From NCBI GenBank assembly GCA_040285825.1, contig JAUPSS010000008.1, forward strand, positions 310,001-374,000: a DNA stretch of 64,000 nt, read 5' to 3'. The notes beneath the pieces were generated by a model. The model was not told the origin of the DNA and did not search any database. It saw nothing but the letters and a program-made list of their open reading frames with translations. Source of the DNA: Eukaryota sp. TZLM1-RC. Taxonomy: Eukaryota > Protista > Metamonada: BaSk clade. Both the position numbers and the translations under genes were made by a program. Below are positions 1,666 to 61,570 of this stretch, piece after piece. Every line of letters begins with the position of its first letter. Positions within the stretch are counted from its first letter, which is position 1.

Positions 1666-2232
1666 GTTAATTTTTAATTTTAAGGATTGATTTTATCAAA
1701 AGTTTACTATTAAATTTTGGTTTTGTAATTAATAAATTATTGCTATTTTAGTTTATGTAAGGTATCTATCATACTGTACAATACTTTTACTACCTCTCAA
1801 TTTTTTACAAATGACAAGACACTTTGGAAAAACGGTAATATGATTCTACAAAACAAAAAATAGAAAATCCAATAAATAAAAACAAGAAAATTATGAGGCT
1901 AAACAACAGTAGAGCTACTGATCTTCTATTCCTTGAGCAGAGATAGAGTCGCCACTGTTGGATGCGCGATGACTGCTAGGATGTCTTCTCTAACAGTTGA
2001 TCAGATACTTTGTTGATCAACACATTGAAGTGCTTTCTGGACATGATCTACCTTATAATTATCAAACTGGATGTCCCAGGTACAGCCTTCATTCAGCAAT
2101 CTTATTGAGAAAATGATTCGTCTCTCTGTTTTACAACTTTTCCCTGCATCTGCAGATGTGCAGGGCAAATCACTTCATTTGCGCTTTGTGGTACAATGTT
2201 GAGTCTGCTTTTGTTCCTTGTTGCTCTACGTT

Positions 2233-4018
2233 ATGTGGCACTTCCAGTATGATTTTATTCATTTCCTCAATTAACTGTAGGTCCTTCGAAGCACCATCTT
2301 CCCCATTGCTCAAAGCTCTACGGAACCTTTCCTCTTGTGATGAAGAGTTTACTGCGCGTAAATCATTGTCTCTGAGACGAGCTAGTACTGGGGATGAGCA
2401 CTCTCCTGGTAAAACCCGTTCCCGCTTACATCGTACTTATGCTCCTCCTCAATCACAGTCACCTGCTAGTATTTATTCCACTCTCTGTCATCATGCTAAA
2501 GTCCCTCTTCATAATGTTATTTTAAAAAAGTTGTCCGCTTTTGATTCCAATACCGTTTCCTCGCTCAACAAGCTGTCCATCTGTCATCAAGCGCTTTCTG
2601 ATGCTGATGTAGCGTTACTCTGTCGATCGCTCTCTGCATGCTCTTCTCTTCAGGAAATTTCTCTCAACCACTGTTCCCTGTCCAACAATGCCTCCACAAG
2701 TGTAGCTAATCTTGTTTACTCAACCACGAGCCTTTCAGTGGTGGAACTCTTTGGTAATGATATTGGTGATGCTGGAATGTATACTTGGTCTTCGCTTCTG
2801 TGCTCTTGTAGTCATATAAAAAGACTCAAGTTGGGAGACAATCCAATCACGTCATCAGGGGCAATCATTCTGTCGAAGGGGTTAAGAACCCCCCAATCAA
2901 GTCTATTACAACTTCATTTAGGTGGATGTAGAATTGGAAGTGAAGGTGCTGATGCTTTAACTGGAGCTTTGATTGGAAATAGTACACTTTCCTCTTTGGG
3001 ATTGAGGGATAATTACCTGGGAGTCAAGGGAATTCTCGCAATCAGTCCATTAATAGCTTCTCCTCTGTGTTCTTTAATGGATATTCAATTGAAGAGCAAT
3101 AACATTGACGTTGCTGGTGCTCTTCATTTCTCCAGAGCCCTCTCCTCAAACACATCTTTAAGAGTAATTGAGGTGCAGAACAATTCTTTTGGTAGCCTTG
3201 GAGCAAAGTACATTTTGGATGCTTTAAAGAACAACTCGACAGTTTCAGCAATCAATTTCAACCAATGTTCAATCAATGACGATGGAGTTGCCGAACTTGC
3301 GTCTTTAATTCTCCACTCTTCAACACTTTGTACTTTGGGTTTAGCAAACAACAACATTACTGAAGAGGGTGCCAGGCATTTAGCATTTGCTTTGACCAAT
3401 AATTCATCAGTAGTTGGGGTAGATTTAAGTTGTAATAGAATAAAAGACGATGGAGCAGTTGCCTTTGGTCAGATGATAGGTCATAATCAAACCTTGACCT
3501 CTCTTGACCTCAGTTCAAATTTGATTGGACCTGATGGAGTTGTTGTTATTAGTAAAGCTTTGGAAATTAACCAAACTCTAAAGCATTTGGATTTAGGCAA
3601 TAATTGTTGTAGAAACAGAGGTGCTATTGCTCTTTCTCAAGCTTTAAAGGTTAATCAATCACTTACAAGACTTTGTTTGACTGATAATTCTATTTATGAG
3701 CCGGGTGGAATTAAACTTAGTGAAGGTCTCAAATTCAATAAAACCTTGACTACATTATCATTTGGTGGTCAAGGAGAACGGGCAAACAGAATTCAGTCAT
3801 CAACAAGAAGAATTATTGATAAAATGGTCAGTAAGAATAGTCAAAATAATCGCAAGCATCAGTCAAACTTTACAAAATCTTTAATTGATGAAGTTTTGGA
3901 AAATAGGTCAATTAGGCAAGGATATGAACTTGCTTATGACTGTGGTCTTTTAGAGTGTCTTGATCTAGACATTGACATGGTAAGCACTTGCCTTGACGAT
4001 GAAGATATTGTATTTTAA
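2233..4018 (+). CDS. RNI-like leucine-rich repeat protein (NLRC3/LRRC-like); probable intron 2247-2280
   Basis: Many 28-aa LxxLxLxxNxIGxxGAxxL repeats. A 34-nt GTATGA...TTAACTGTAG intron joins ATG 2233 in frame to the long ORF. The start is uncertain. Confidence 0.75.
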
Positions 4019-4111
4019 ATGTATTAAATAAAAATGTAAATGAACTTTATTACTTATTACAGAGATTGATCAAAAATGTTTGAAATAAATTTAATAGTTT
4101 GTGAAGACACC

Positions 4112-7100
4112 TCACCTTCTTTCAGGGGGCCGCAAGCTATGGATCTTTACTTCATGACTTATTTCTTCTGGAACAACAAACTCGTTTGGTGTGATCAAGA
4201 TAGTTTGATGAACATAGCGATTGTCTTTCTTATCTAATCCAGCCCTAATTAAATGATCAAATGTAAGGTTGCGGTGGTAAGAATCTTGGTAAACATCAAA
4301 CTCATCTAGACATTTGATAGGATGAACCAAAACAGCTGAACAAGCCTTGAGAAAGGCAATTGTGGTAACGGACCTCTCACCGCCAGAGAGATTGGACACT
4401 TCTAATGGGCCTCTTCCGGTATCGACGAAGAGAGAAATACTTTCAGATTTGAGATTAATTTCAGCGAATGCAAATGCATTTTTCTTCATCACTTGCAAAT
4501 TTTCTGAAAACCTATTTCTAAAAGTAGTAAAGACGTATTCTTTCCACTTATTGTAATTTCTGTCTGCAGTGACACACTGCTCACTAAATTCGATTGATTG
4601 CTCCTTGACACTAAGAAATCTAGATGTCATATCATTATATTCCAAAAGACAATGTTCGGTAATTTGGCTTTGTTCAGCAAAAGAAATATTAAATTGAGAT
4701 TCTCCTCTTTCAATTGAAATAAAAAGAGAATTAATTTCATTTTCAATATCGGATTTATCTTGAGGCGAATAGTTGGAAAAATCTATTCCTGGGCAGTGAC
4801 ATGTCAAAAAGTCCAATTTTTCAGCAAGTTTGGCACTCAACTCAGTCAAAATAATTTCTGCTGAATGAATTTGATCAGACAATTGACTAATTTTTGATAG
4901 ATGTACGGCAATCTGTTCTTTGACTTTGTTAATCTCAGTCTTAAATGCTTCAAAAATTGCATTTTTTTCTTCAAATGAAGCTTTTAGTTCAGCAAAAGCA
5001 TTTTCATGCAAAAGAATTGTATCTTTTCGACTCATCACATCAAGCTCCAGCTTTTGAATATTGGAGTTGGATTCTTCCATATTCGACTTTTCCTTGATAA
5101 TACTGGAATTCAACTCATCCAATTTCTTTTGAGTTTGCTTTATCATATTATCAATGAAATCTTGACTGAATTCTGATAACTCCTCTCTTAAGTTGTCTAT
5201 TCTTAGCTGAAGTTCTCGTTTTTGAGAGTCGGTGTTATCAATTTCTCTTTTGATTTTAGCATAACCTTTTTTAAGCTTGTGAGCAAAATCTTGCTTTACT
5301 TCCAAGTCACCAGATAAACTCTCTTTTGCCCTTTCCATATTCAATAACCTATCATTTAACCTAGCAACATCGCTTTTGATTTCAATCAATTTTTGATTGA
5401 ATTCCGCTTCCCTTTCTTCACTATTCTCCTCTCGTGAGGCCCTTTTCAGAGCTAGCAGAACGACCCTATCTGACGTGGGAAATTTGGAAATATTACCACT
5501 TCCAACTTTTGAACATGTCCAATCTCGACAGCTACCTTCAAATTTTCCTATTCTCTTATGTTCTTGACTATCATACATTACAGTTTTCAAAGCATTAGCA
5601 TCGCTAGCAAAGAATTTCTTATAAGGAACCACTCTTTCAATAAAAGAATTATAAATTAAGTTTAAATCAACAAAATCATTGATATAATCATGATAAACAA
5701 ACTCGATAACAGTATCTGCTCTGGCAACATTAGAGAACCCATTTATGTTTAAGCATATTTGAGAATTTAAAATGATTTTCTCTTTATTAGAATAAGTCAT
5801 TATTCTTAGGGATCTGAAATGACGTCTGCTAATTTTCAATAAAAGTTCTAAATCGTGAGAATTTTGGACCAGAAAAGAGTTGACCAGGTTGGAAAAGGCA
5901 AGACTGGCTGAATGGAGAAAATTTGGGTCATTCACATTAAAAAAGCAACCAATTGGACCAAAAACGGGCTGTTTGAATAAATTTCTTTGTTTACTAGAGG
6001 TTAACTCGGTCAAAAAAGATTCAGCATTTTGACCTAATGGGGCAAGAAAACGTTTGACTGATGCCAAATCTTTTGAAGGATATGGCCAAAGTTCATCAAT
6101 GCTGAGGCGATCATCCATTAGGTCGGCTGATCTAAAAGACTGTAATTTTTGCTCAACCTCAGACTGTTCAGAGAGCAGAGTGTCACGTTTTTGTGACAAG
6201 CCAAATATTTCAGAAGAAACGTTGTTGAGCTCTTCCCGGGTACTATGGAGCTCTTCTACAGCAACTTGATACTGGGAATTTTGCAGTTCACATTCAGCAA
6301 TCAAATTTGATTGATTTTCTTGGAGACTACTGAAATCTTTCAAACTCTTTTCTAGCTCTTGATTGAGCTCTATTGCCCTTTCGTCGAAATTCTGAGCTTG
6401 TAAATTATCCAGCTGTTGAGAAAGTTCAGCATGTGAAGACTCATATTGATCAAGTCGTTGGCAAGACATAGAGAGACTCTGTTTTTCACCAGTAAGAAGG
6501 GAATGTTCCCTGTTCAACTCTTCTTTTAATTGAATGATTTCGGAATTAATTTCTACTAGTTTAGAATTGATTTCATCTCTTTCTTTGAACGCCACATCTA
6601 AATTTTCTTTCAACTCATCAGACACAACAGGACAATCTTCTTGCAACTGATGCAGCTTCCCCACCATATCATCATAAGCAAGTTGCTTCTCCAAAACATT
6701 TTCCTGTTCAATCAAATAACTGACGATATCAAGTTCCATTTGCTTGAATTCTAACAATCTTCGGTTCCTAGCCAGATCAGACATTGAGAGAAGCTTTTCA
6801 ACTTCCAAATCAGATTCTTCTTTCAATCTCCTACACTGTCGTCTGCAATGAAGTATACGACCTGGAACTGCTTCTTCTTTTAGTTTAGCAGCCTGTTCGA
6901 GCCTAGCTTCCATTGACCTTAACTGAGAAGCCTTTGCGATGAACGAGAATAAATCCTTACCGTCATTTGAAACAAAAATCTTCATATCATCTTGACTTAG
7001 CATTTGAAGGGGGGAAGAAAAGTCAATGGAAAGCTTGTTGAAGAGAAAGTTTTTAATGTCACAAATTCTGGTTAAATGGATGTTCCCTCCTCTTAGAGTG

Positions 7101-7450
7101 GTAGTTTGAAGCGCTCCATTGACGTTCTTGCTTATTTTCTTGTTTAAAGACACGCTGCCATCACATTGATGGAAGAGGGGATGGTCGGTGGGAAGTGTGA
7201 TGATACAGTGAAGTTCCGCCTGACAATTGGGGTTTTTGGAGTTTATATAATCGGCGAGCGTGGTGGAGGAGTGGTGACGGCGTTCTGAACATCCAAAAAG
7301 AAGTGTAAGAGCATTGAGGACCGATGACTTACCGGAACCATTTCTGCCCGTAATTATGTTTACAGCAGGTGTGAAGTCAATGGTGAAGTGATCATGGCAC
7401 CGAAAGTTCTTCAGTGTAAGACTCGAAATATGGACAGAGTCTGTAGACAT
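4112..7450 (-). CDS. SMC6: Structural maintenance of chromosomes protein 6
   Basis: LKNFRCH, Walker A GRNGSGKS, coiled coils, hinge GPIG, signature LSGGERS, Walker B LDEFDVYQD. Confidence 0.88.
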   Translation of the reverse strand: MSTDSVHISSLTLKNFRCHDHFTIDFTPAVNIITGRNGSGKSSVLNALTLLFGCSERRHHSSTTLADYINSKNPNCQAELHCIITLPTDHPLFHQCDGSVSLNKKISKNVNGALQTTTLRGGNIHLTRICDIKNFLFNKLSIDFSSPLQMLSQDDMKIFVSNDGKDLFSFIAKASQLRSMEARLEQAAKLKEEAVPGRILHCRRQCRRLKEESDLEVEKLLSMSDLARNRRLLEFKQMELDIVSYLIEQENVLEKQLAYDDMVGKLHQLQEDCPVVSDELKENLDVAFKERDEINSKLVEINSEIIQLKEELNREHSLLTGEKQSLSMSCQRLDQYESSHAELSQQLDNLQAQNFDERAIELNQELEKSLKDFSSLQENQSNLIAECELQNSQYQVAVEELHSTREELNNVSSEIFGLSQKRDTLLSEQSEVEQKLQSFRSADLMDDRLSIDELWPYPSKDLASVKRFLAPLGQNAESFLTELTSSKQRNLFKQPVFGPIGCFFNVNDPNFLHSASLAFSNLVNSFLVQNSHDLELLLKISRRHFRSLRIMTYSNKEKIILNSQICLNINGFSNVARADTVIEFVYHDYINDFVDLNLIYNSFIERVVPYKKFFASDANALKTVMYDSQEHKRIGKFEGSCRDWTCSKVGSGNISKFPTSDRVVLLALKRASREENSEEREAEFNQKLIEIKSDVARLNDRLLNMERAKESLSGDLEVKQDFAHKLKKGYAKIKREIDNTDSQKRELQLRIDNLREELSEFSQDFIDNMIKQTQKKLDELNSSIIKEKSNMEESNSNIQKLELDVMSRKDTILLHENAFAELKASFEEKNAIFEAFKTEINKVKEQIAVHLSKISQLSDQIHSAEIILTELSAKLAEKLDFLTCHCPGIDFSNYSPQDKSDIENEINSLFISIERGESQFNISFAEQSQITEHCLLEYNDMTSRFLSVKEQSIEFSEQCVTADRNYNKWKEYVFTTFRNRFSENLQVMKKNAFAFAEINLKSESISLFVDTGRGPLEVSNLSGGERSVTTIAFLKACSAVLVHPIKCLDEFDVYQDSYHRNLTFDHLIRAGLDKKDNRYVHQTILITPNEFVVPEEISHEVKIHSLRPPERR

Positions 7451-7669
7451 TCAAAGTCTTGTTATGACATTTGTGGACAATTAATTACTGTGCTAATTTT
7501 CAAATTCGCAACACCCACCCACCCAATCAACAACCACCCTTCTTATCAGTATCTCAAGTTGCAAATCAACAGTAAGAGAGTTGTAGTAACACACTATGAT
7601 GTAGTTTCTTCGACAATCACTACAAAGTCAACATCGAGGGTCCTACCCTTGTGGATACACCGTGACCTT

Positions 7670-9849
7670 CTCTGTCGTACTCAAATCCGATCAGGATAGA
7701 CCAGGGCTATGCGTATCCTAAGGTTGTCTCTCAATTTTATTCATAACCTTTTTAAATAAACATCATTGTTTCTTGTTCCTTCCTATTGTCTACACAAGCA
7801 TGGTGGGCAACCATAGAGTTCTGGCCATAACCCTGCACACTTGCGTATGCAATTATTCTTTGCTGCTGATATATCTCTATCATACACTTGATGACATGCT
7901 GGACAAAGTTTGTATAGTCATACTAGGGTTAATTTTGCCTCACGATGGCAGCAGCATGAGAATTTACTGGTGCCGAATTCATTGGTCATTAGCACTATAA
8001 TGTTTCTCTGGCATTTTAGCTATGCAATGAAGCAACGGGCAAATTCGTATCGTTGTACTTTTTTGAAACGACCAGGAAGTTTTGCAGCGCCGACAGCTAA
8101 ATATAGCGTATCTGGGTATCCTGCTACTCGTTTAAATTCATTTAATGCCTCTTTGAATCTTCTTTCTTTTCCTCTACGGTTGTCAAACTGCAGATATTTT
8201 CACTTGGCACGATTTCCTTCCCTATATATTCTGTCTTTAACCAGTATCTAATGATTCATATATAGTTTCATACTATAAACTGAATACTGACAGAGAGACA
8301 TTTTGTGAGGTGAAGGTTTTGTTTTGAAGCTTCTTGATGTTGGACATGGTATGACTGCTTCTCCGTATTCCTTCCAGAAACCACATAAGCGAGATTGTCC
8401 CGGGTCCACACCGTCAACAGGGTGTATAGGATTGTGCTCAATGGGAGGTGCTTCTGAGGACCTCCTGGATCTCCTCTTTTTTCCAGCAGCCTGAAATTTA
8501 ACACTTTGAGTGATCTGGTTGGTAGAAGGATCGTTAGTCACCTCTTCTTTGGTCCTTCAACGCCCTGGTGCCCTTTCGTTAACCTCAGAAAACGTAACTA
8601 GAATCTCGCTTCCATTGCTTCTTACTGTTGTCTCACTGAACTTACTTTTCACCTCAACATTATTAATACCAAAGAATGAATGAGGACAAGTTTTGATTAC
8701 CCTTTTTAGATTAGCATCAGTACAATAAATTGAAGTGTATATTTGAGCTCCTTCCATTAAAAATTCGTGATGATTTCGGAACTGTAGGCCACTAACTAGC
8801 AGCAATTTAGGGTTGTTGTGGGATGCTAATAAACTTGATTTTATGCGTACGCCAACAGAAAGAAAAACGTCTTAGCTCTCTGCTTAGATGATCAGCTAGA
8901 CGCATGTTGAATCCCATTAGGTCATCATTATGCTGACTACAGAGCTCGACATGATTGGACGTTGTCAATATTTCTTCAACAATAGGACATTTATTCAGAA
9001 GTTGTTCTAAGTAGCAACAAACCAGAAACATTACTGTTTCTGTTGGATGGTGTCCAAATTCGAGATTGAAATAAACCTCCACATAGATGTTCAAATTAGA
9101 ACGTTGATTGAAGAATCAATAAAGTCATCTTGGAACTCTTTATTCAAATTCCTGCCCTACAATAAGCCTTTAGACAATTTTTCAACCAAAATGAGCACAT
9201 TTTTGGCAGTGATGATTTGAAATTTGAAACAAGGTTTTTTAAGCGTATAAAAAAATAGCTTGTGACTGTTGTGACATTAACTGAGGAACTGTTGTTTGAT
9301 TCCACCGAGTTATTAAAAAATAAATGAAATTGCTGATATTAATACTAATGATATTAATTTCTCCATCATAATGGATCCTGACCACATCATAATCTTCTGT
9401 AGATTTAAAACTGGTTTTTTCGGGCATAAGTGACAAGACATCATTGTAAAACAGTTGCTTCAGTTGTCTTTGCCCTTTTGAGGTACCCATATTTGTAACC
9501 CATCCCTTATTGGTAATATTCATAAATAAATACCACCCATCATATTTCAGTGCAGCTCGCCTGCATAAGGGAAAATGCAGAATAAACAATTGTAAACGCA
9601 AGAAAACCTCATGGCATATTTCAGTAACTTTTGGGATGTCATTGGAAATGGTCTCCACTGCAGCAGGTGTAAGCAAAGAGTTGAGAGCACAAAACCGGGT
9701 AAAGGTTTTGTTGCTCTCTCTGGTACAACAACACGTTCTAGTGTTCTTAAATACGGTAGGCTTTCACTGTTTTTCTTTCTTAAAAGTAGTTTATTGTGTA
9801 ACTGTTGTCGGTTGTTGGGTTTCAATTGGTTTGACGTCACTTTTCTCAT
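7670..9849 (-). pseudogene. Decayed near-full-length Fanzor1 (TnpB-like RNA-guided nuclease)
   Basis: Ordered fragments across stops and frameshifts: KVTEICHEVFLRLQLFILH, TVRSNGSEILVTF, RuvC-I DGVDPG (~8400), LYLAVGAAK, RuvC-II VLMTNEFGTSKFSCCC (~7950-7995), GCPPC, RNNDV. Confidence 0.78.
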
Positions 9850-10251
9850 TCAAAACTGAACTTACCTTTATTTACATTTTACCTGGTCATCTCAAGTTCA
9901 GTACTTTCAAAAACTGGCTGCAATAAATAATCTCAACAATCATTTTTTAAACTACATGCTGTCACTTGAACGTATTGGGGTTTGAATGTATCTTATTTCT
10001 TGATATCGAGTATCCATTCTTCCTTTATTTTACCTTATCCTGGACAATTAATTATTTTTTGACTTAAAATGTCAAACATAACACTTTCTGTGCAACAAGA
10101 AACCGCTAATTAATAACTTGCCAGTGTTTGGCACAAATGCTCGGTTATTTTCCACTCTTATTTAACCCAAACATGACAGCGTTGTTCATTTGGTGTCTGA
10201 CTACTTCGGCTAAAAACAAAATCAAAAAATGCAATGCACCTTTATCCCAAC

Positions 10252-11355: not shown

Positions 11356-11474
11356 CAACCTGGTAATGTTGAGTGCATAAAATATTAGCTGTTTCTCTGA
11401 TGTTTCTCTTTTGGAATACTTGGTATGAGACTCCTCGAAGTTGTGAAGTGTTTACTAAAAGAAAGATGATATTG

Positions 11475-12890
11475 TGTGGTTGACATAACTGTAACAGAAT
11501 AGAAATAAAGGATATTGATTCAATTTCACTGGCCCTTATAAAGGCCATCACTAGTGAAGTCTTTACTAGACTATTTGTCCACAAGGCCACACTACCTTTT
11601 CCCCCTCTTAGATCTCGCAAAAGAGCTGTAAGAATTAACTGCAGGAGAATTAGTCTTAGATTTGAAATCGGAGTTCATTTTCTGTTTCCTGATAGTGCGA
11701 GGATTGAGGGTGCGCAGATATGATTGATTTGCCTCATTGCTTTTGACGTCAGCAACTGGGACAGCCGATGTCTCGCCGCCATACCAAACTGCGGTGCTAT
11801 AATGACTTTTATTATTATTCAATTCTATGAAATGAAAGTAATCAATAATTTTAATTATCAGAGATTCTTCCATTTCATCGGCAGCAATGTTCTTATGCCA
11901 ATCTATATCTTAATTAGGGAAGTCAGTGAGGTATAGTTCGCATTAATTAGTGCTAGCCGTCGAAGTCGAACCAGTGACAAGATTCTTGAGTAATGTTGAG
12001 TAATGAGTAACTTCTATTGAATTTCACTTTTTGGATGAGAAGAGGGCCAGCAAAGCAACCATGGAGTTTAACATTAGTTTTTAATCGCAAAACATGTCAC
12101 CTTTATTAAAAGGGTTCCTATGTTTGTTAACTTCAGAAAGTTGTTGAGCTTGCCTGAGCACTGCCTTTTCTCTCTTCTTTGAAATTCTTTCAAGTTTTGT
12201 TTCAAGATCTTTAACAAAACAAGGGGAATATTTACATTGGCTGATTTTATTAGTTCAAACATATTATTAGGATCAGCTCTAGGGATTTGATCGCTGCCAA
12301 ACATCAAATTGTATGGAGAGTGACCAGCGACTCTACTCATAGTTGAATTAATTTGAAGTTGTACAATTGGAATATGTTCACTGCAATTGCTATAATCACC
12401 AGAGTCCACCAAAATCTTTATCTGACTTTGTAAAATGTTTTTGCAACGTCTTTCCACTAACCCGTCGCTTTTTCAAAAACCAGTTAGTGAATACTTCAAT
12501 ATTTAATAAATCGCATGACCTTTGAAAATGGCATTTGCAAATTCAATACCATTATCGCTATGAGTTAACAGTGGGATACTTAAATTGATGCAACGCTCCA
12601 TAGGAGGTGCTTGGTTTCTTCCACTACATTCAATTTTTTTGCAGGCCAAATGATCCTGTATCTAGTGAAAGAATTTACAAAAACTATTAAATATTTGAAT
12701 CCATTATCATGTTGTTGTAATAATCCAATAGTGTCTGCGGTTATTCGAGCAAAAGGACAATCTACCCAAAGAGAGCCAGTTACTTCACTGACATGACATT
12801 TTTAGGCACATGTGCCGTCTTTTGACATGCTGGACATCTCTTAATATGGTTAGTCATGTCTATGGGTTGATGATTACCATAATGTTTAAG
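11475..12890 (-). mobile_element. Decayed Ty3/gypsy 3' half: integrase, chromodomain-like segment, PPT and 3' LTR
   Basis: PFARITADTIG, SDNGIEFAN, GLVER, HSPYNLMFG integrase motifs; chromodomain-like IIKIID...VWYGGETS; PPT AAGAGGGGGAAAAGGTAG; TGTGG..CCACA LTR 11475-11591. Confidence 0.7.
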
Positions 12891-12929
12891 AACCTACGAA
12901 GCAAGCTTTTTTCGTCAGAGAATATTTCT

Positions 12930-13390
12930 GCATGTGTATGCATATCAATGTCAGAAAATCTGGTTATTTGGAATTTGAGGACTCATTCTCAATATAAGTG
13001 AATTTTTACTCTCCAAAACAATTTATGGTGGTCAAACCTTCCAACAACAATTGAAATTAAAAAGGTTTTCTTATCCGAAATCCATTTATCCATTTAATCA
13101 CCAGTTTTCCTATTCAAAAGATTTGCACCCTCTTTTCTCTTTTTGTTGAGAATCTCATCAAGAGGGAGAAATTGGTCATCAGTATTTTGGTAAAGTTGGC
13201 CATCCTGACACGTTTCAAGATCAAAACACATAGCTGTGGGAAGATTTTGATTTGTGGTCATTGATTTTGATTGAATCAAAGGACCAGGTTTTAAACTACT
13301 AAGACTTGGCTCAATTTTTTGACCAAGAATCCAAAACAACAAGATCATTTTTTTACTCAAATTATGTCTGTGATTTCGAATCATGGTAAT
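12930..13390 (-). repeat. Decayed copy of PolB-type exonuclease-like element (paralogous to 58330-58740)
   Basis: KIEPSLS...MCFDLET.QDG.LYQN...QFLP.DEI.NK is shared with the 58486-58791 ORF. Confidence 0.75.
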
Positions 13391-13649
13391 GTCCTAACGA
13401 GGAAGCTTATTATCTGTCAGTTCAATTGTCTACGTTGGTATTCAACAGAATATTCTTCTCGGGTTTTTTAAGAGACAAAAAATTCAAGATTTGATGTCTT
13501 GAACTCTCAACATAATAATTCAAATATAACTTTTTATTTAAAATGAATGTTTAACATGAACAATTTTCTGGAAAATGATCAAAATAAATTGTTTCATCCT
13601 CAGCCACTGAAAAATCAAATTAATCAAGTCCAAACAGCAACAAAATAGG

Positions 13650-13915
13650 TCGATAAAAATCCACGTATCAACGTTATAGCGACAATAGTTCTCGCAAAAT
13701 CGATATTTATTACTATAGATCAGATTGTGGAGTCAAGACCATCAGAGACGCATGATATGTTCATTCGTCACGAGCTTACCATAAAGATTATGCGAAAGTT
13801 TGTGAAATGAGGAAATCACATGCAGAAGGTGAAGATAGTCCAGTCTACCTACAGAGAGCCAAGGTTGATGAAGGTTCAAACGAAGGTTTCAAAAAGAAAA
13901 TCTTCAGTGTCTCAA
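13650..13915 (+). pseudogene. Possible Fanzor C-terminal remnant
   Basis: MFIRHELTIKIMRKFV then (frameshift) HAEGEDSPVYLQR resemble the Fanzor end seen at 57055 (LFSRNKLACLNM...GNERPQYLCSR). Confidence 0.4.
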
Positions 13916-13917
13916 AA

Positions 13918-13955
13918 CCTCCACATTTGACACTTATTTCATTGTTATAGACAAT
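13918..13955 (+). promoter_or_regulatory. Conserved upstream element shared with WDR18-like gene
   Basis: CCTCCACATTTGACACTT...TTTCATT...TAGACA, starting 48 nt before the ATG. Confidence 0.6.
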
Positions 13956-13965
13956 TTAATCAACA

Positions 13966-15657
13966 ATGGTTGAATTTGAAGTCATTGATGTATTCAACTG
14001 TTTACACCTCTATGACTCTGCTCTTTTTGTAGCTGATCTTTTTCTTAATGAACAATCCCCATCGATCGACTATTCTAGTTTCCAAACCCCAACACTTGAA
14101 ATCTCTCCTTCTTTTCATGTAGCTAATACGTACTATATGGTGGGCAATTATAACAGAGTAGTACATCATCTTTCCCACACAGACAATGATCTAGAACTGT
14201 TCCTCAAATGTCAATCTCTTCTCAAACTTGGCGAGTCTTCACCACCAGAGAGTAGTGACTCTCTTCACCTATTCCAACCATCTAATACTAATGCTTCGAT
14301 TGTTTTGTCTTTACTGACAAATAAAGCTACCATTGAAGGTGATTTCGATGATCTCATTGAACATTTAGGCACTTTTCCTTGGTTTAATTTACATCTGTTA
14401 GGACAGTCTTTACTTTACCTGAATAAGAAGCAGTATGCCCTCCACTGCTTCCTTTTGTCTGTTACGAAATGCCCTCTGTTTTATGATGCTTGGAAGTGTT
14501 TTTTCCAATGTGTTTCCGATAGAAAACATTTGGATCTTATTAAAAATTTATTTAAGGCAGATGGATCAATTTCATCTATAATCTCAGCTTTTTTTCTTTG
14601 TCTATTTTACATTTCTATAAGTCACCACAGTTCAGCCGAGCCATATTTAAATCATTTTTGCCAGTTTTTCCATAAATGTCCCTTGTCTTTAGAAATACAA
14701 GGTAGGTTTTATTATTCATGTCGAAACTTTCCAAAGTCCCGGGAATTCTTTGAGAAAATCGTTGACCAGTTTCCTAGTCGAACTAGTGGATTGGAGATAT
14801 ATTCAAACTTGTTGTATGTTGATAATAATGCACAAGAAATTTCTAATTTATCAAACAAAATGTCAATTAATTTTTCCAATTGCTGGATTGCAAATATTAT
14901 TAAAGGTAATTACCTTTCTCTAAAACAATCAAGAAAAGAAGCAAGTATTTACTTTTTGAAAGCACATTACATTTCTCCATTTTCCCCAATCCCTCTCATC
15001 CTATTGGGACATGAATTACTGGAACTAAGAAACCTTGATGGATCACTCAAGGCTTACCTAAAGGCTAGTGAACTTGCTCCATTAGATTTTAGGTCTTGTT
15101 ATTCCCTTGGACAATTATACGAGGTCTGTGGGCTTCATCAATTATCTGTCCATCATTACTCCCAAGCTCTAAACCTAAATTGTGAGGAACCTAGAATTTG
15201 GTCAGCATTGGGGTTAGTTTATGCAACTTTAAAGAATTTTGACAGCTCAAAAAGACTTTTTGAGAAGAGTCTGGAGATTTCTTCTGATGATGATGTCATT
15301 TGGTTGCATTACGGGTCGGCTTGTTGTAAATCAAACGATTTGGACAAGGCTTCCAAAGTTTTCCACAAAGTATGCACCGGATTTGAGTTTTCAGATGTCG
15401 TATTACCTTTATTAGATGATGAGTTCCAAAGCGAACTGGTAATTTGTTCTAAATATTTAAAACAAAAAGGGGAAATAAAGATGGCTGAAGAGATCCTTTT
15501 GCCAGTATTGGAACTTGGTTCATTGACTTTGCCTGAAGTCTCATCTTTTCTGGCCTCTTTAACAGTCAACAATGGTGAAGTTTCCGGTCGATATTCCCCT
15601 ACTAAACGAGTCAAGTTTAATTCAAGTAGAGGAGTGAGGAGTCCTATTCAAAGATGA
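13966..15657 (+). CDS. CDC23: Anaphase-promoting complex TPR subunit APC8/Cdc23
   Basis: TPR array with LEIYSNLLYV, IKGNYLSL, LLGHELLELRN, DFRSCYSLGQLYE, RIWSALG. Confidence 0.82.
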   Translation: MVEFEVIDVFNCLHLYDSALFVADLFLNEQSPSIDYSSFQTPTLEISPSFHVANTYYMVGNYNRVVHHLSHTDNDLELFLKCQSLLKLGESSPPESSDSLHLFQPSNTNASIVLSLLTNKATIEGDFDDLIEHLGTFPWFNLHLLGQSLLYLNKKQYALHCFLLSVTKCPLFYDAWKCFFQCVSDRKHLDLIKNLFKADGSISSIISAFFLCLFYISISHHSSAEPYLNHFCQFFHKCPLSLEIQGRFYYSCRNFPKSREFFEKIVDQFPSRTSGLEIYSNLLYVDNNAQEISNLSNKMSINFSNCWIANIIKGNYLSLKQSRKEASIYFLKAHYISPFSPIPLILLGHELLELRNLDGSLKAYLKASELAPLDFRSCYSLGQLYEVCGLHQLSVHHYSQALNLNCEEPRIWSALGLVYATLKNFDSSKRLFEKSLEISSDDDVIWLHYGSACCKSNDLDKASKVFHKVCTGFEFSDVVLPLLDDEFQSELVICSKYLKQKGEIKMAEEILLPVLELGSLTLPEVSSFLASLTVNNGEVSGRYSPTKRVKFNSSRGVRSPIQR

Positions 15658-15765
15658 TTTCAGTGCAATTAATTGGTTATTGCCAGTTATGCCTGGATTT
15701 TAGTAATTTGTAACAATGAATTCAAATTCAAACAATAAATTAAATTAAAAAAGAACAAAATGCTT

Positions 15766-17600: not shown

Positions 17601-17815
17601 ATATTTATTGAATTTGCACACTTAATTAAATTAACTCATAACTAATGGGACGACTATCATTGAACCAAGATTTCCTCTACAAAATCTTGATCTGCTTGCT
17701 GTCTAGCTAAAGCTTCTCTTATTCGATTGAAAAACTGAGGTAATCTATTAATAATGGCAAATTGAATCTGTGAACGCCATAAAAAAATATCAAATCTTTT
17801 CATTGTTTTTTCTGT
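17601..17815 (-). mobile_element. CRE-like family A 3' fragment
   Basis: Matches the 3' end and 3' UTR of the 23965-27290 element. Confidence 0.9.
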
Positions 17816-18352
17816 GGTTTTTGAAATGCATACTTTATAGCATCAATCAAACTTATTCCAAGAACTTTCATTCTTTGTGAGATTGTCCACAAACGTTCTA
17901 GAATCTTCGAATAATTGGCCACCAATCTCAGTGAGCCCATTTCTCCTCTAGAACAATACGTAGCTTTGAAGCTAGTTTCTTTGTGGTCTCTGGAACGCTT
18001 CTGGTCTTGTTCCATAGTAGTGCTCACTAACTGCAATTTCTAGCTAATTTAGTGATGTAAAAATGTCTCTAGACCATACTTGATTACATTCCGGACAACT
18101 GAAATAGGCGTTGTGAACTTTAACTTCACCATCAACTTCTCGCTAGATCTTTTGGTGTAGCATTTTGCAGCAGTTTACCTTTGCAGATGTCATATATTCA
18201 TCTCCGATCTTCACATTATCAAATGAACATTGTAACAACTTGAGAAACGCCTTACGTGGTGTTTTCACTTTTTGACGTGATGTACCACCACCTCCATTGC
18301 CAAACCACACCTTTATTTCTCGACGGTCTGCAAATATTTTCACTTTGCTGAT

Positions 18353-21729: not shown

Positions 21730-22116
21730 ATAAATTATATTTATTGAATTTGCACACTTAATTAAATTAACTCATAACTAATGGGACGACTATCATTGAA
21801 CCAAGATTTCCTCTACTAAATCTTGATCTGCTTGCTGTCTAGCTAAAGCTTCTCTTATTCGATTGAAAAACCGTGGTAATCTATTAATAATGGCAAATTG
21901 AATCCGTGAACACCATAAAAATATATCAAATCTTTTCATTGTTTTTTCTTGCACCATTTTTTGGAAGTCATTCAAAAAAGTTTCTGCTTCAACTGATAAT
22001 CTTCCATTTATCGAAAATGGGAAAGCAATAAAAATCAGCTGTGTATTTCTATCGACATTAGCCTCTTCAATATCTTTATCATATTTTCTATGTTTCTCTT
22101 TTGCTTTAAAATCCAG
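21730..22116 (-). mobile_element. 5'-truncated CRE-like family A copy
   Basis: Family A 3' end; TSD AACTGATG at 21722-21729 and 22117-22124. Confidence 0.88.
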
Positions 22117-44415: not shown

Positions 44416-44494
44416 TTGAACTGATTCTAGAAAAAAGATCTTGAAAAAAGCTTTTTCTTACTTCTTGACATTTTTGACTTTATCTCCTTTACTT

Positions 44495-49653: not shown

Positions 49654-49699
49654 TTTTTGTATAACTTGATGTAAATTGAATTTTTTTTAAAAAACATTT

Positions 49700-54405: not shown

Positions 54406-54469
54406 TATTTTTATTGTAGGGTTCTCTATATGATTTTATAAAAAAACAAGAAAAGTTTATTGATAATGA

Positions 54470-54600: not shown

Positions 54601-55418
54601 CCCATTCTCCCAACTTTCCTCCTTCAAACCCCTTTGTAATCATCCTCCCAAAACGCTTTCATTCCAATATTCTCTGGTTCAACATCCCATTTAAACACCC
54701 ACAAACTTATCTTCAGTGATTATTGTTACTTCATATACCCCTGCTAACGAGGTTAAGCCTCATCCAGATTGTCCCAAGTGTGCAATCAAACTGTGGAGGA
54801 AGAGTATGATGTATTAACTATTTGCAAATTCGTTATCTGACGTTTAAATCACCTAAGTTTACACAATATTTTGTGTCTTTCATACCCGGATAATTCTAAA
54901 GAGCTGCAGAAGTCGACGAATCATCATGATGCAAAAGTACTAGATGTTGAAACAATGGTAATTTAACACAATAAATATTTTTGAATAATGTAATATGTAA
55001 ATATATTAAAAGTGGAAACAGAATGTTTTATTGGGGCCTCTACATAGTAGAGGATCATGGATCAAACACAATGTGCAGTATATATAAAACTGAACACAAA
55101 GAAATCAAAACAAAAAGATAGTACAGTTTAAAACCTCAAGCATGGGAAAACTAATATCTAAAGTGTCATGGGCCGACAATAGGCGCTCGCGTGATATCTG
55201 AGCTACGTGAGAGCCGATGCTTGAGAGTTTTCCTTGGAATTGAGTGCATTACGTACAGAAGGAAGATTGTTGGGTGTTGTGAATTTGAAATTAAGCACCT
55301 GAATTGCAAATCACAGTTTCATTGCGAAAATTGGCATTCGGAGCTATGGTTTGAAAGAGGATGAAAAATTTCTGTTTTTTCAATATCGTTTTTTCATATC
55401 TAAAGATACTATCTTATC

Positions 55419-55703
55419 ATGTTGACTGAAGAAAAACTAGTAATGAACTATCCATTGGTTGTGCACAGCGAGCTCTCTGATGAAGTTCAAGATGAGGCTG
55501 TTGAGATTCTCGTCAATTGTTACGAAAAGTACCCCACACATCTCGAAACCGCAGCCAAAGCCGCTAAGGATGCATTGGATGCTAAGTTTGGCTCTTCTTG
55601 GAACTGCTGCTTAGGAAATTTTGACTTCACCATTGAACATTCCGGACAGATACTATTTCTGTATATCAATGGCACTATTGGTGCTTTATTGTTCAAGTGT
55701 TAA
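55419..55703 (+). CDS. Dynein light chain type 1 family (DNAL4-like)
   Basis: YPLVVHSELSDEVQDEAVE...AAKAAKDALDAKFGSSWNC..G.FDF. Confidence 0.85.
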   Translation: MLTEEKLVMNYPLVVHSELSDEVQDEAVEILVNCYEKYPTHLETAAKAAKDALDAKFGSSWNCCLGNFDFTIEHSGQILFLYINGTIGALLFKC

Positions 55704-55760
55704 CTGATCTACAAAATGTAACATACAACTTATATTTTATTTTAACTTACTCTAAAAGAC

Positions 55761-56981
55761 TTAGATCCAATCTGCGTCTTGAATTTTTCTCGGGAGATAC
55801 TCTTGGGTAAGGTATTGGAAACCGAATGTTGAAAGAGCCTGTATTTCTGCCTTTTCTTTCTTTTTTATCATCAAAGATAGTTCCTTTACCCATTTTGGAT
55901 TTCTTTTAATAAAATCTTCTTCCAAAAGCTCTTTACCTGTTTTGATATCCTTATCCGTCATTGATAGCCTACATTGACTGGGAATACCATACTTGTCTAG
56001 ATCAGAAGGGAGGACACCCAACCACTTAATATCAGGTGTAGTTAAATGAGCAGAATCATAAGACATGTTCTTGGAGCCGGACATGTAGACCGAAAGAATT
56101 TTCAAACCATAAGGATCTGAATCAAACAGTCCTAATATTGGAATCTGAAGGGTTTCCTTTAGCTTGGCCAAAAAAAGTCTAGTGGCAACATCAGGTTGTC
56201 CCTTTGCGGTAATAATAATACATGGGAATCTGTTATAGAAACGATCTTCGGCAAGTCGCATAAAAGCAGCATCCTTCTCTACCAAAAGAATGAATCTCGC
56301 ATCAGACTGCAAGTTGGTAACTTGGTCAATGAAGGGAGGTATGGCCTTCCCACCAGTACCCATTCGAGAACAGTCAATGGGATCACCGTTCTCAGTGTAT
56401 TGTAACCTACCTACAACCACACCCTTTTCAGAGGCAACAACATGTAGTGATGTGCGAGTGACACCAAGAAGACAAGCACAATCGTCGAGCATATCATCAG
56501 AAGTGGTCTGTTCTTGGAAGAGCTTCACATCAGTATAAAACAAATCTCTCTTTGTTGTGTGAATACCCTTGTTGCACAACTCACGTATTAAGCGTAAAAC
56601 TCTGCACATAATAGCAGTTTTTCTAACCATGGACACAGATGCAAACGATCTAGTTGTTTCTTTACCTCCAAGTACAATCCTTTCGAGTTCTTCAACATAA
56701 TGTTGGTTAGAAGACGCTCTGGAGGGAAGTGTGAATGACACACCCTCTCCCTCAAGAATTGTGTGGGCGATTCGAAGCATCTGCTGTTCTATAGACTGAG
56801 AAACCTGACTTGCACCTAAAATTTGGACTTCTTTGAGATCAAGTTCTGTGGATATGTCATCTAAGGAGAGTCGTTTCCGCTTATTGGCCTTTTCCTTTCT
56901 AGATAAAACATCAACATGTACAAGTATATCATCAACGTCCTCAGGTACAGACGATGAAGCTTTACGTTTGCGAGGGGGCAT
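55761..56981 (-). CDS. SPO11: Spo11/DNA topoisomerase VI subunit A (Top6A/SPO11-3-like)
   Basis: TKRDLFY (catalytic Tyr), [39 protein letters not shown]. Confidence 0.93.
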
Positions 56982-57054
56982 TGATAAATATCACTAAAAA
57001 GTGGGAAATTCCCATAAATACACGATCAATTTTCGTGTGGAATAATTACAAAAA

Positions 57055-57710
57055 CTATCTACTACACAGATACTGAGGCCTTTCATTGCCACTCATTCTG
57101 GCTTCAGCAATTGCAAACATATTCAGACAAGCCAGCTTATTTCTACTGAAAAGCTTTGTTGAGCCTTTGTTACTGAGTTTGCAACTCTCACTTTTACAAG
57201 CTAATAAACCATGACATGTAGTAACAGGAGTCTTTTCTCTTCTATAGAATCTGGGATTTGTTACTCTCAAAAACGTAGAAACCTTTTCGAAGCAAACAGG
57301 ACATTTTGCTGAAGTGAAAACTTCATTAATCGTCAATACTTCAAATCCATTTCTTTTCAGCAATTGAATCCATCCAATGCCTCTAGTAGGTCTCTGATGT
57401 TTCAAATTCTTGGAACCTTTTTTACCATAATCACCAATTAGTATTGAAGTGTCTTTTGGGTTGCCAAAATTCTGAACAAGGCTTTTTAACAACCAACTTT
57501 CAGTCTTTTGCTTGTGAATAAAAGCTTGCATTTTATGAATGCTCCACAACTCAAGACTGTAAAAGTCAATTGTCCAAAAAACTTGCCGAAGTTTGGCAAC
57601 CACAAAGTTGGAAAAATCTATAATAGTTGCTGAATTGGCAGCAAACGCGGATAATTCGGTGTTTGCATCTTCGATTGTCATTTCGTTAGACTCTATCATT
57701 CGGTTCCTGT
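57055..57710 (-). pseudogene. 5'-truncated Fanzor1 (C-terminal ~215 codons in one open frame)
   Basis: ILIGDYG, PTRGIG, RuvC-II INEVFTSAKCPVC, NPR, HGLLAC..C, RuvC-III position SRN (Asp replaced by Asn), ERPQYL. Confidence 0.9.
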
Positions 57711-57899
57711 AGTAAGGATAACATGTAAGGAAAAAACAAATGGACAAAGTACATAATGAGTGCACAATGTTGTACCTTCTATATTAGTGAATGCTTCAAT
57801 ACATCACTATTATATCATTCAAAAATCTAATGCATTGGGATTTTGACAAGTTTAACCCCCTCCTCAGTCACCACGTAATACTTCCTTCATGGACTATAA

Positions 57900-59100
57900 A
57901 CATATCGATCATATTGAGTTGATGGTTGTTCGAATTGTTTTATAAGATGGTAAAATAAATTTGTCTTTCTGAAACAACACGAAAAGTTTCAGACAAAGGA
58001 TACAATCATGAAACCCATATTGAATCGATTTTGTATCAGAGGAGAAGTAGCTAAACAATCAATTGGCAAAATATGGGAAAATTCCCTATGAAGTTTGAGT
58101 TTCATTTCATTTATCATTTTATATGCCAGATTGCCTAATCCATGTCCGTAGGGTATTTTTATGGATTTTTTGGCAAATACCAAAGTATCTAAAAGAAAAA
58201 AGCCATTTTCCCTGATGACAACTTCTCTCCATCTTGGTGAAAGTTGATTGAGTACATCAATTGCTGTATCATCGGGAACAGTGGGAAAAGTTAAATCATA
58301 AGCTTTAAAAACCTACGAAGCAAGGTTTTTTCGGCAGAGAAAATTTCTGCCTGAATATCCATGTCAGTGTCTGGTAATCTGACTTGAGGACTCATTCCCA
58401 ACATAAGTGAATATTTATTCTCCAAAAAGACATTATGGCGGTCAAACTTACCAATAACAATCGAAATTAAAAACACTTTTTGATCTCAAATCCACTCACG
58501 CATTTGCTCATCAGTTTTCTTTTTCCAAAGATTTGTACCCTCTCTTCTCCTTTTGTTGATAATCTCATCAGGAGGGAGAAATTGTCCATCATGATTTTGA
58601 TAAAGATGACCATCCTGATAGGTTTCAAGATCAAAGCACATAACAATGGGAAGATTTTGATTTGAGGTCATTGATTTGAATTGAATCAAAGGATCAGGCT
58701 TGAAGCCACTAAGACTTGGCTCAATTTTTCTGACAATACTCGGTTTCAATGGTTTTTTTGTCAAAATCTTCTTGTTCTCGATATTCAACATTGTATTCTC
58801 AATACAAATTTCTCGGTTCAGTGCTTATTGTTGTTTTTTTAGCTTATGCTTTGATGTTTGTTGGTCAAAAATTGCATTTCTTATAATTTTTGATGGAGGA
58901 GTTGATTTAAAATTCAATTTTCTCTTTCTGGGACCAGGATTTGCTTCAACATCTCCATCCATTGTTAAGTCAGCAATAAATGGGTTTGTTGATAGAAGAT
59001 GTCGGCAGCTACTGGTTTGAAAAGATACATTATAAACATAATAATCAAACTCAACATTATCAAAATAGCGATTTAAGACACAACATCCCATATCTAAAGT
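57900..59100 (-). pseudogene. Decayed element: 2A peptide followed by family-B DNA polymerase 3'-5' exonuclease-like domain
   Basis: DLTMDGDVEANPGP, then in the same frame across stops MCFDLET and IFSAEKTLLRRFL; after a frameshift, LLDTL...GLGNLA. Confidence 0.55.
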
Positions 59101-59315
59101 GCAAGTAGCTAAACCTCAAAAATGAACGAACTCATAAACATCAAAACAACAATGTAAAACAAAACATATACAAAAAAACATCCCACATTCACGAAACAAG
59201 TACGTGAACCACAAAAAACAACAAACTGAAAAACATCAAGACAACAATTCAAAACAGAACACAAACAAGAAAAACATCCCATATTCATAGTGCAAGTACC
59301 TAAACCAAAACAACT
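59084..59315. repeat. ~96-bp degenerate tandem repeat (~2.4 copies)
   Basis: CATCCCA...CAAGTA...AACC recurs at 59084, 59179 and 59275. Confidence 0.75.
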
Positions 59316-60016
59316 CAACTAACTAAACATTCTATTTCTTTGGCAAAGAGGCTGTCTTTTAAAAACCTTGAACAACCTTGGATCTAGGTAGGTATCATTA
59401 TATACACAGATATTTCCAAACCTACCAAAAATCAGGGTAGTTTAGAGACTTTATACTTAATCAAAATTGTATGTTTTCTATTAGGAATCAATACTTTAAA
59501 ATTAGTGTTGGTGACACATTCTCTAAAATTTGCCTTCACATCACAAATAGAACATGATCTATTTCGTTCCTTATTCGTCATTTGTGAAAATTCTGTAATC
59601 AAAACTTATTTATCCTTTACCACTGATTATCGTTTATGATACCTTTGTAAAAATAGAAAACTTTTTCCCGAACTTTGAACTCCAATCACCAATATCATCA
59701 ACTACATCATCAAGGGGAGGGATGCGATGCTTAGTGGAATATATCTGCAAACTTCATTTTCTTAACTACCTATTGTCATGGAAGGTAAGTTTCCCTAAGG
59801 TTATCTTTATATTTATTTGATTTAAATTTTGGAATTTATTCTTAAAAAATTGACAAACATTGAGTGTTGAAAATGGAACAAATGAAAGAAAAAAATATGC
59901 AAAATAAAAGTCAAAAATAAAATTCCCCCAATTTCTAAACATTGGTCTAATTTCTGTAAAACACAGTTAAGGAGAATTAAACAGGAATAATCTAACAACA
60001 ACTAAATAAATAGAAA

Positions 60017-61219
60017 CTACATCTCCACAAACTCGGACAACAAATTCTGAGAAATTTGCTTCCATTTCAAAGCCTCAGTTTCCCAATTCAAAAGATTTTG
60101 TGAACCGCAAGAACTATCAAAGCTACAATTACTTACTAAACTACCAGTCAAGTCTCCAACAATGGCATTACTTAGTGAGTCATCGTTAGAACAAACGCCA
60201 ATAAAGCTAGAATTGGTAGATACCCTTTTCAAGGGAGCAATAACAAAAGCTTCCTTACTGGATTTATCAATCAAATTGGATGGAGTCGGTATGACAAAAA
60301 GGCAAGAAACAGGACCCTTGACATCAACATTGGAAACACATTGACCATCATTGACCGACCAAGACTTTATTGAACCATCAAGACTCCCACTGAAAAGCCT
60401 TTTAGAGTGTTCAGCAAAGCAAACTACTGATACCTCTGACTCATGGCTCTTCTGGCATTTGACTAGGTTTGGATATGTATTGAGCGAAACATTCGTCAGA
60501 CTGATCATTGAAACAGATCCAAAACCTGTCCCAACCGCCAAACAAGTTTCCAAACTGTCAACAGCCATGGATGAACAGGGCTCTGGAAGGGTAAAGGACC
60601 ATAGAGACACACCAGTGACGGGACAAAGGATAGCCAATGTTCCATCAGATGAAGCAGCAAAGAGTCTGGGGGGAAGCGTGGAAGGAGAAAAAATGAGTGA
60701 AGCAATGGGAGCAACAAATGAGGTAAAAGAATGTCTGCAAGTGGGGTGAGGTGGGTCAATGGTTCCATAAAGAGAAAGAAGAGAGGAAAGGTTCCAGACA
60801 ATGACAGCAGAGTCTACCCCTCCTGTAGCAAGGTAGGAACCACAAGGGGAAGTAGAGAGAGTTTTAATGGGACAAAAGTGAAGTTTAGAGGAGCAAAGGA
60901 GGGTGCCAGTTGATGTGTCCCAGATACGAATAGAACCATCTTGGCAACCAGCAAGGAGAAGTGTCTCATCATGAGAGATGCAGAGAGAAGTGGGTTGTAT
61001 ATCGAGAGTGCATCGGTAAACTGGTGAAGAGCGACCGTAAAGACAGAGGTAAATTATAGGAGACCCCGGATGTATAGATGCAAAGAATGAAGACGAGTAA
61101 GCAGTTGAGCGGAAATCAGAATGAACTTGCTTAACACTGGCAATGGTAGCCCCAGAAACAGGATGCCAAAAAGATATGCCAGGCTGTGTAGCAATTCCGG
61201 ACACAATGACTTCTTCCAT
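60017..61219 (-). CDS. WD40 protein, WDR18/Ipi3-like (rixosome)
   Basis: WD repeats (GSIRIWDTSTGTLL..KLHF.PIKTL, LATGGVDSAVIVWNL); first ATG at 61219. Confidence 0.75.
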   Translation of the reverse strand: MEEVIVSGIATQPGISFWHPVSGATIASVKQVHSDFRSTAYSSSFFASIHPGSPIIYLCLYGRSSPVYRCTLDIQPTSLCISHDETLLLAGCQDGSIRIWDTSTGTLLCSSKLHFCPIKTLSTSPCGSYLATGGVDSAVIVWNLSSLLSLYGTIDPPHPTCRHSFTSFVAPIASLIFSPSTLPPRLFAASSDGTLAILCPVTGVSLWSFTLPEPCSSMAVDSLETCLAVGTGFGSVSMISLTNVSLNTYPNLVKCQKSHESEVSVVCFAEHSKRLFSGSLDGSIKSWSVNDGQCVSNVDVKGPVSCLFVIPTPSNLIDKSSKEAFVIAPLKRVSTNSSFIGVCSNDDSLSNAIVGDLTGSLVSNCSFDSSCGSQNLLNWETEALKWKQISQNLLSEFVEM

Positions 61220-61229
61220 ATTTACAGAC

Positions 61230-61263
61230 AATGTCTAAAAAATGAAAGTGTCAAATGTGGAGG
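61230..61263 (-). promoter_or_regulatory. Conserved upstream element shared with CDC23
   Basis: CCTCCACATTTGACACTTTCATTTTTTAGACA, starting 44 nt before the ATG. Confidence 0.6.
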
Positions 61264-61269
61264 GAACTG

Positions 61270-61570
61270 AGTTTCCCATTATTCTTTTTTGTCTTCTTAT
61301 AAAGAAATCAAACTTGTTGCGGCACAGGGCTCAGTGATCTCCATTGATCAGCAGTTGGTCTAGTATAGTACTTGGACGGAAGCCGGTATTCCTAATTTCT
61401 TCCTGTGTCGGTACACATGCGTTTCCGAGGGCCTTGATTATTTGCATAATCTTTTTAAAAAAATTAGTTTTCTGCGCTTTCTTACATTTGAAACAACAAC
61501 TGGTTCCAAACTCATCAATTAAAAGGACTTTATAACCAGCCCTTTGAAATATAATTCTTAAACTTTTGTT
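61270..61570 (-). pseudogene. Fanzor1 C-terminal remnant
   Basis: KSLRIIFQRAGYKVLLIDEFGTSCCFKC is RuvC-II plus a Zn motif; it is not in the ORF track. Confidence 0.75.

Follow-up and report, generated by a model that had tools for sequence, protein, structure and literature searches.

Fanzor1 elements docked co-directionally at the 5′ ends of host genes in the metamonad Skoliomonas litria

MCi-2 of Mucor and CRe-1, -2 and -3 of Chlamydomonas are, like the elements analysed here, Fanzor1 elements that lack terminal inverted repeats (TIRs) and whose 3′ region is conserved, with 5′ ends that vary or are truncated (Bao and Jurka, 2013, PMC3627910). Their target-site duplications (TSDs) are ~7-19 bp long, compared with 14 and 10 bp here, where most other loci have none, and those of MCi-2 open with ATAATT, as does the inferred empty site of one of our elements, F1 (PMC3627910). 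Gene-start targeting is unreported for MCi-2 and the CRe elements and their terminal hairpin contains no start codon (PMC3627910), unlike that of our family A2; another difference is that many of the elements here carry 2A, Ulp1-like and PolB exonuclease parts. The proteins SpuFz1, PpFz1 and GtFz1 share with ours a RuvC and zinc-finger C-terminus and a structured non-coding right end (Xu et al, 2024, PMC11423790), and GtFz1, like our A clade, has Asn as its third catalytic residue (PMC11423790). SPu-1, on the other hand, has TIRs and a TA duplication, and docking at host genes is not known for any of the three (PMC11423790).

The DNA investigated (the window) is a stretch of 64,000 nucleotides from the anaerobic protist Skoliomonas litria (TZLM1-RC), a metamonad. 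Host genes were hand-curated out of gene calls, and broken ORFs were translated with X at the breaks rather than joined into spliced models. Four Fanzor1 elements, F1 to F4, are all on the minus strand and co-directional with SMC6 (4112..7450, -), CEP131 (15766..17514, -), SPO11 (55761..56981, -) and a WD40 gene (60017..61219, -), respectively; the last is named on WD40 only, WDR18-like being the label of the preliminary description. F3 matches PpFz1 (E 2.7e-21) and SpuFz1 (E 1.8e-17), and for F1, F2 and F4 the matches are to Fanzor profiles or to paralogs in the genome, which bears out the earlier assignment of these four remnants. Pfam hardly picked up the Fanzor remnants and an Rfam search of positions 1-55000 found nothing. 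In a quick tree, made without bootstrap, the four belong to distinct Fanzor1 lineages. All Fanzor copies in the window are broken pseudogenes.

F1, a near full-length but decayed element of family D (7488..10040, -; 2.55 kb), keeps the RuvC D/E/D motifs, has no TIR and ends in CACAG 37 nt upstream of the SMC6 ATG. It is flanked by a 14-bp duplication (left copy 10041..10054, -; right copy 7474..7487, -), the right copy being original SMC6 leader or core promoter sequence; this length was reached by 0/600 resampled sequences. F2 (17810..21345, -), of family C and ~92% identical to copies at loci L005 and L002, also ends in CACAG and is split by a retrotransposon at ~18357-20134. Between its end and CEP131 lies a 212-nt 3′ fragment of a CRE retrotransposon (17602..17813, -), and the distance to the ATG is ~295 nt with this piece included. 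F3 (57001..59327, -), of family A, consists of a 2A motif near 58953, a PolB-type exonuclease and a Fanzor C-terminal ORF (57783-57055) with Asn at RuvC-III, and its hairpin right end is 19 nt upstream of the SPO11 ATG. F4 (61220..61567, -) is a family mosaic, in which an A2 RuvC-II piece (61567-61467) is followed by family B sequence (~61465-61274) and then by an A2 right end (61273-61220) that abuts the ATG of the WD40 gene at 0 nt. The distances first given for SMC6, CEP131 and WDR18 (~220, ~240 and ~280 nt) were measured from coding remnants rather than from the right ends; the 73 nt given for SPO11 runs from the stop codon, not the right end, to the ATG.

Of the weaker remnants proposed, that before CDC23/APC8 (13966..15657, +) proved to be a family A2 remnant with internal deletions (13478..13965, +), whose right end abuts the ATG (0 nt), 12 nt past its conserved TAGACA. 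Upstream of the dynein light chain gene (DNAL4-like; 55419..55703, +) the case is mixed: a family D right-end remnant (55271..55305, +), 113 nt from the ATG, matches the right end of F1 over 35 nt (83%, E 0.002), but a protein-level Fanzor search gave no signal. The one proposed at the LRR gene falls away, as its scores are no better than those of shuffles, and no Fanzor signal was found upstream of the LRR, ARL, SET and u282 genes. The window also holds a fragment of a family A element, comprising the exonuclease region without a right end (12864..13325, -).

The bias of Fanzors towards 5′ ends, in co-directional orientation, extends beyond the window and exceeds chance. In a sample of ~0.23 Mb a co-directional gene lies ahead of 27 of 29 Fanzor right ends, against a null of 60% (p ~7e-5; ends inside one pile are not independent). 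At loci chosen blind, all eight were co-directional (8/8) and five of the eight right ends lay within 320 nt (null 4.7%, p ~1e-5). CRE retrotransposons, taken as a control, had no orientation bias (11/18, p 0.56). The preliminary description had proposed such a test against null placement, and its claim that several Fanzor lineages insert at gene 5′ ends is upheld by the tree, the orientation statistics and the TSDs. It might be argued that the arrangement arises by chance in a compact genome, where large intergenic gaps mostly adjoin 5′ ends and 60% of random placements are co-directional, or that a host promoter motif has been taken for a transposon end. The motif is however the terminus of a 3.8-kb repeat, on which ground the promoter-motif candidate was rejected. 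Distances as well as register lie well outside null expectation, orientation in the CRE control is unbiased and the blind test largely refutes chance, so that we regard this reading as highly improbable.

The register is most precise in family A2: every copy (7/7) has its right end on a host ATG, those at CDC23 and the WD40 gene included, and one of the seven was predicted blind. The junction with the host falls within a CAATG overlap at the start codon, though starts are only 2.6% of the tolerated CAATG-purine sites, and the ATG closes the terminal hairpin of the element. Two A2 copies are 94% identical across 3839 nt, with homology ending at the G of the ATG. A guide of A2 would thus consist of the opening codons of the host gene, not of its UTR. 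Family A lands in the leader or core promoter, 19-80 nt upstream of starts, and family D in an AT-rich leader or core promoter. The earlier proposal that each guide is a host 5′ UTR or transcription start sequence would fail for A2.

Such a pattern could also result if insertion is random apart from a need for CAATG or TAATT, with gene-start copies surviving as promoters and the others being deleted. Intact young A-clade copies away from starts or facing 3′ ends, together with the oldest remnants, which are cut down to the right end alone, would be consistent with this. It would, on the other hand, require ~40-100 lost insertions per survivor, and the 94%-identical A2 copies are still 3.8 kb long, with no off-start A2 end found among the copies examined. 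CRE copies of similar divergence survive at sites that show no bias, which means that neutral insertions do not simply disappear, and we consider this explanation unlikely.

The gene-start rule depends on family and species. In the sister species TZLM3-RCL both copies, which are A-clade, face host 3′ ends, and in TZLM1 the rule is not followed by one P31 copy or by the intact copy P0197. A few A-clade copies also face 3′ ends; the statement that no remnant is only 3′-adjacent is clearly contradicted at loci L008 and L009 and weakly by a P36-family right-end remnant (15681..15721, -; nhmmer E 0.011) facing the 3′ end of CDC23, a possible counter-example within the window.

A second TSD, of 10 bp and including the ATG, was found at CHMP7. 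These two are the only clear ones, L012 and most piles showing none; chance repeats of 8-12 nt were excluded from the count, and the ThiF locus has a 10-nt match. TIRs are absent in the two elements with both ends defined. The two TSDs and the lack of TIRs mark these elements as insertions whose 3′ end is fixed and whose 5′ end varies. The long element proteins yielded no transposase domain and the element proteins no HUH domain, and no Helitron or Crypton partner turned up in the sequence examined. The proteins carry RuvC I/II/III and a zinc finger and are closest to Fanzor1 structures, families B, C and D being long-branch and less securely placed. The RuvC D/E/D triad is kept in A2, B, C and D. 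The exonuclease fusion is conserved, with no exonuclease seen in families B, C and D; intact exonuclease-fused copies exist (P0197, P0029) and offer natural proteins for characterisation.

As no transposase was found in the elements, it could be that the Fanzor itself picks and opens its target without one. An omegaRNA with AUG and a short seed at its end would direct cutting at start contexts, the fused exonuclease would trim the ends, and the element would be copied in, beginning with its 3′ end. The conserved exonuclease fusion, the canonical RuvC triad of A2, the existence of family mosaics and a duplication that takes in the opening bases of the putative guide would fit. However, one gene's guide would fail to match another gene past the AUG, and docking is common to distant Fanzor lineages, which with the missing exonuclease of B, C and D favours shared machinery; we think this account a little less probable than random insertion with selective survival.

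Our preferred reading, to which we would give a probability of about 0.6, is that TIR-less Fanzor1 transposons target the starts of host genes and that the right end is kept as a putative promoter or leader. Integration would be one-ended and target-primed, starting at the element 3′ end through a short match to the target, with machinery supplied in trans (a candidate CRE reverse transcriptase or HUH enzyme) acting at open promoter DNA. Divergent genes without a Fanzor between them are often a mere 25-75 nt apart, so that an insertion would displace the native promoter. The right end must be transcribed outward for the omegaRNA guide and would then serve as promoter or leader, being retained during ORF decay as later elements pile up behind. 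The earlier suggestion that ends are retained while ORFs decay is supported. Conservation of the non-coding right end continues past the stop codon and stops sharply; its predicted fold is significant in families A (z -3.9) and B (-3.5) and not in A2, C and D, with little covariation. The nuclease probably has its ordinary function, cleavage of the empty allele, rather than one in regulating the host.

The preliminary description had offered the elements as a candidate system for RNA-guided promoter targeting. On this regulatory reading, retained omegaRNAs would lead Fanzor proteins to the promoters or leaders of host genes and control expression, as with TldR. The guides would indeed be host 5′ sequence, and in the A2 hairpin the AUG has a predicted mean pairing of 0.89, versus 0.64 at other starts, though no compensatory changes were found in the hairpin. 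The Asn at RuvC-III in A-clade proteins might suggest loss of cleavage, but it is of the active GtFz1 type (PMC11423790), and a nuclease-dead A clade was rejected. The window copies are moreover broken, the families are multicopy and decaying rather than single conserved genes, each guide would match its own locus only, the docked genes have no common function and the CDC23 ortholog in GEM-RC1 has no Fanzor upstream. With nothing to indicate action in trans, guide-based host regulation by docked Fanzors is without support and we judge it very unlikely. It is doubtful, too, though conceivable, that a Fanzor element finds start codons through pairing of its terminal hairpin with the host start context and perhaps integrates by its own nuclease and exonuclease, the omegaRNA forming the leader of many core genes and the AUG being hidden in the hairpin, so that binding of Fanzor might gate translation of the host gene.

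On the preferred reading of gene-start targeting, Fanzor DNA would appear to have taken the place of the normal promoter and leader in many core genes, the scale implied being 6/12 genes in the window and 5/27 neighbouring genes at other loci, both samples being enriched. A search of mainly non-subscription literature turned up neither Fanzors in metamonads or at start codons nor a rule by which a mobile element lands on the start codon. The movement of transposase-less Fanzors, open since 2013, becomes testable now that the target, the end and the duplication have been defined.

Insertion near gene starts is known from other elements. The DNA upstream of genes serves Tf1 of S. pombe as a safe harbour for insertion, and the element can affect expression of the neighbour (PMC3553992), and Ty1 and Ty3 insert upstream of Pol III genes (PMC7459421). 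These are LTR retrotransposons that use integrase tethering, unlike the elements here, and in the literature consulted we found no description of docking by them at the ATG in a fixed register. Carriers of Mariner or MuDR DDE transposases have TIRs and TSDs of fixed length, whereas here TIRs are absent and duplication lengths differ. TldR and dCas12f are TnpB-family proteins whose guides match host gene 5′ regions (10.1101/2023.11.30.569447; PMC13472631). They are nuclease-dead and non-mobile and act in trans; the elements here have neither an inactivated RuvC nor a non-mobile gene with a separate target, but are multicopy, mobile and decaying, with guides that would come from their own flank only.

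The main Fanzor remnants of the window are genuine, as the preliminary description had proposed: F3, at SPO11, matches PpFz1 and SpuFz1, and 27 paralogous fragments (75-93% identity) were found in the TZLM1-RC genome. The window's SPO11 protein maps to contig JAUPSS010000008.1 of GCA_040285825.1 (Eukaryota sp. TZLM1-RC), which we take for the free-living metamonad Skoliomonas litria; the paper with its genomes makes no mention of Fanzor (PMC11316075). When the window was set against eight further loci from the genome (L-numbers below are fetched loci), several families emerged: A (F3), A2 (F4, at the WD40 gene taken as WDR18, and the remnant at CDC23), B, C (F2, at CEP131), D (F1, at SMC6), E, P31 and P36, with F4 a mosaic of two families. 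In a quick tree A2, the A clade and B/C/E form separate branches, so the pattern does not stem from one lineage. Of the weaker remnants, that claimed at the LRR gene scores at shuffle level, and that at DNAL4 is a short family D right end only. The called LRR ATG follows a pyrimidine tract and CAG (2140-2158), so an intron may precede it and the true start may be elsewhere.

A PolB-type exonuclease is present in A-clade and A2 elements, and fusions of Fanzor to this 3'-5' exonuclease occur at window 58953 (reverse strand), at L005:10748-12691 and in P0197, P0188 and P0029, copies outside the window. A-clade proteins show a 2A motif, with their exonuclease-fused Fanzors standing behind this StopGo sequence; one (P0188) has a Pfam Ulp1 match, and A2 has a motif that by eye is similar to Ulp1. 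No transposase domain was found in the long element proteins. An Asn at RuvC-III in A-clade proteins is no sign that the nuclease is dead. The gene call for P0175, also outside the window, places a DEAH helicase ahead of the Fanzor, which a gene-model fusion may explain. The family A 5' region holds a 95-nt tandem array (59037-59330) whose copy number differs among paralogs.

The observation that Fanzors precede genes was largely right, and is stronger than first stated. At eight loci fetched on protein similarity alone, with neighbours not known beforehand, the next host gene was co-directional at all eight and within 320 nt at five, against 60% and 4.7% for a null of every intergenic base in both orientations. 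Over all loci 27/29 right ends are co-directional with the gene, though ends within one pile are not independent; CRE retrotransposon 3' ends in the same DNA gave 11/18, the chance expectation. The claim that none is antisense or only 3'-adjacent has exceptions, a weak one in the window and clear ones elsewhere. Both copies from the sister species TZLM3-RCL point at host-gene 3' ends 150-255 nt away (L008:13876 and L008:3599), and target preference may differ there; one P31 copy runs antisense, 2.7 kb separate the intact P0197 copy from a gene, and within the window the 3' end of CDC23 is faced by a weak P36 end. The rule is thus strong but family- and species-dependent. The single copy in GEM-RC1, another relative, lies 128 nt before a gene.

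About 12 host genes in the window are interspersed with many CRE copies, some with inverted segments resembling 5' inversions (36448-36634, 18344-20143). F2 is bracketed by two copies of one CRE 3' segment (97% identical; 17602-17813 and 21736-21949), reflecting either a pair of insertions or a single long duplication of the target. CCATT just past the CRE piece near CEP131 resembles the final bases of family C, and an out-of-frame ATG ahead of an A run (17575) may be the true CEP131 start, given a homopolymer error. Direct repeats of 144 nt (99%; 10252-10395 and 11216-11359) surround a 224-aa ORF lacking any Pfam match, possibly a small LTR-like element.

Docking is most exact in A2. At all A2 right ends found, the host-ORF ATG comes 12 nt after a conserved TAGACA; the docked genes are CHMP7, CATSPER-like, ThiF (at the second of two ATGs), a P-type ATPase, CDC23 and WDR18. 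Docking at a new locus was predicted before its DNA was read: the element there and the CHMP7 copy share 94% identity across 3839 nt, with homology ending on the G of an HSP70-like gene's ATG. Start codons make up 2.6% of CAATG-purine sites in non-coding DNA. An eighth, degenerate copy sits before Med10. In the last A2 stem CATTG pairs with CAATG, the hairpin being closed by the ATG together with the purine that follows; compensatory changes were not observed. Element and host overlap in CAATG, so the ATG may come from either. One family C end, and probably one family B end, also adjoins an ATG. CDC23 here and its GEM-RC1 ortholog begin at aligned positions, the latter being a gene upstream of which no Fanzor was found, so this insertion is lineage-specific.

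F1, terminating in CACAG, has a 14-bp duplication on either side (10054-10041 and 7487-7474), which places its insertion point 37 nt ahead of the SMC6 start codon. The CHMP7 copy has a 10-bp flanking duplication that includes the ATG (2/5000 resamples). Neither has terminal inverted repeats (TIRs), and element 5' ends are variable. At CHMP7 a family A end lies ~43 nt before the original ATG, so piles grow through repeated insertion at one start. At three genes the terminal 45-60 nt of an A2 end are immediately preceded by a family A end (L007:10527-10580, L006:11535-11610, L003:10680-10725). A2 tails may be a homing target for family A, in which case the family A guide would be multicopy.

Position, orientation, register, duplications and the fact that ORFs decay while ends persist are all read directly from the DNA. 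The probable mechanism is one-ended, target-primed copying that begins at the element 3' end, with an integration enzyme supplied in trans and acting at open promoter DNA. Divergent host genes share very compact bidirectional promoters (window 44415-44441, L003:12470-12546, L009:20665-20715), the gap being 25-75 nt in three of four Fanzor-free cases. CDC23, SMC6 and WDR18 are normally essential, and here their ORFs are intact, so that the element end probably supplies transcription of the docked genes; the omegaRNA is known to run beyond the right end (PMC10530073). Giardia leaders are mostly <20 nt (PMC3792122); with the short divergent gaps, this puts an end at 0-40 nt where the core promoter lies. 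The proposal that the guides target promoters for regulation is unsupported. Each copy's predicted guide would fit that copy's own empty allele, which is the role TnpB and Fanzor usually play. The duplications, missing TIRs and variable 5' ends are the same signature as in MCi-2 of Mucor and CRe-1-3 of Chlamydomonas (PMC3627910); the elements are TIR-less Fanzor1 whose target, gene starts and in A2 the start codon itself, has apparently not been described before.
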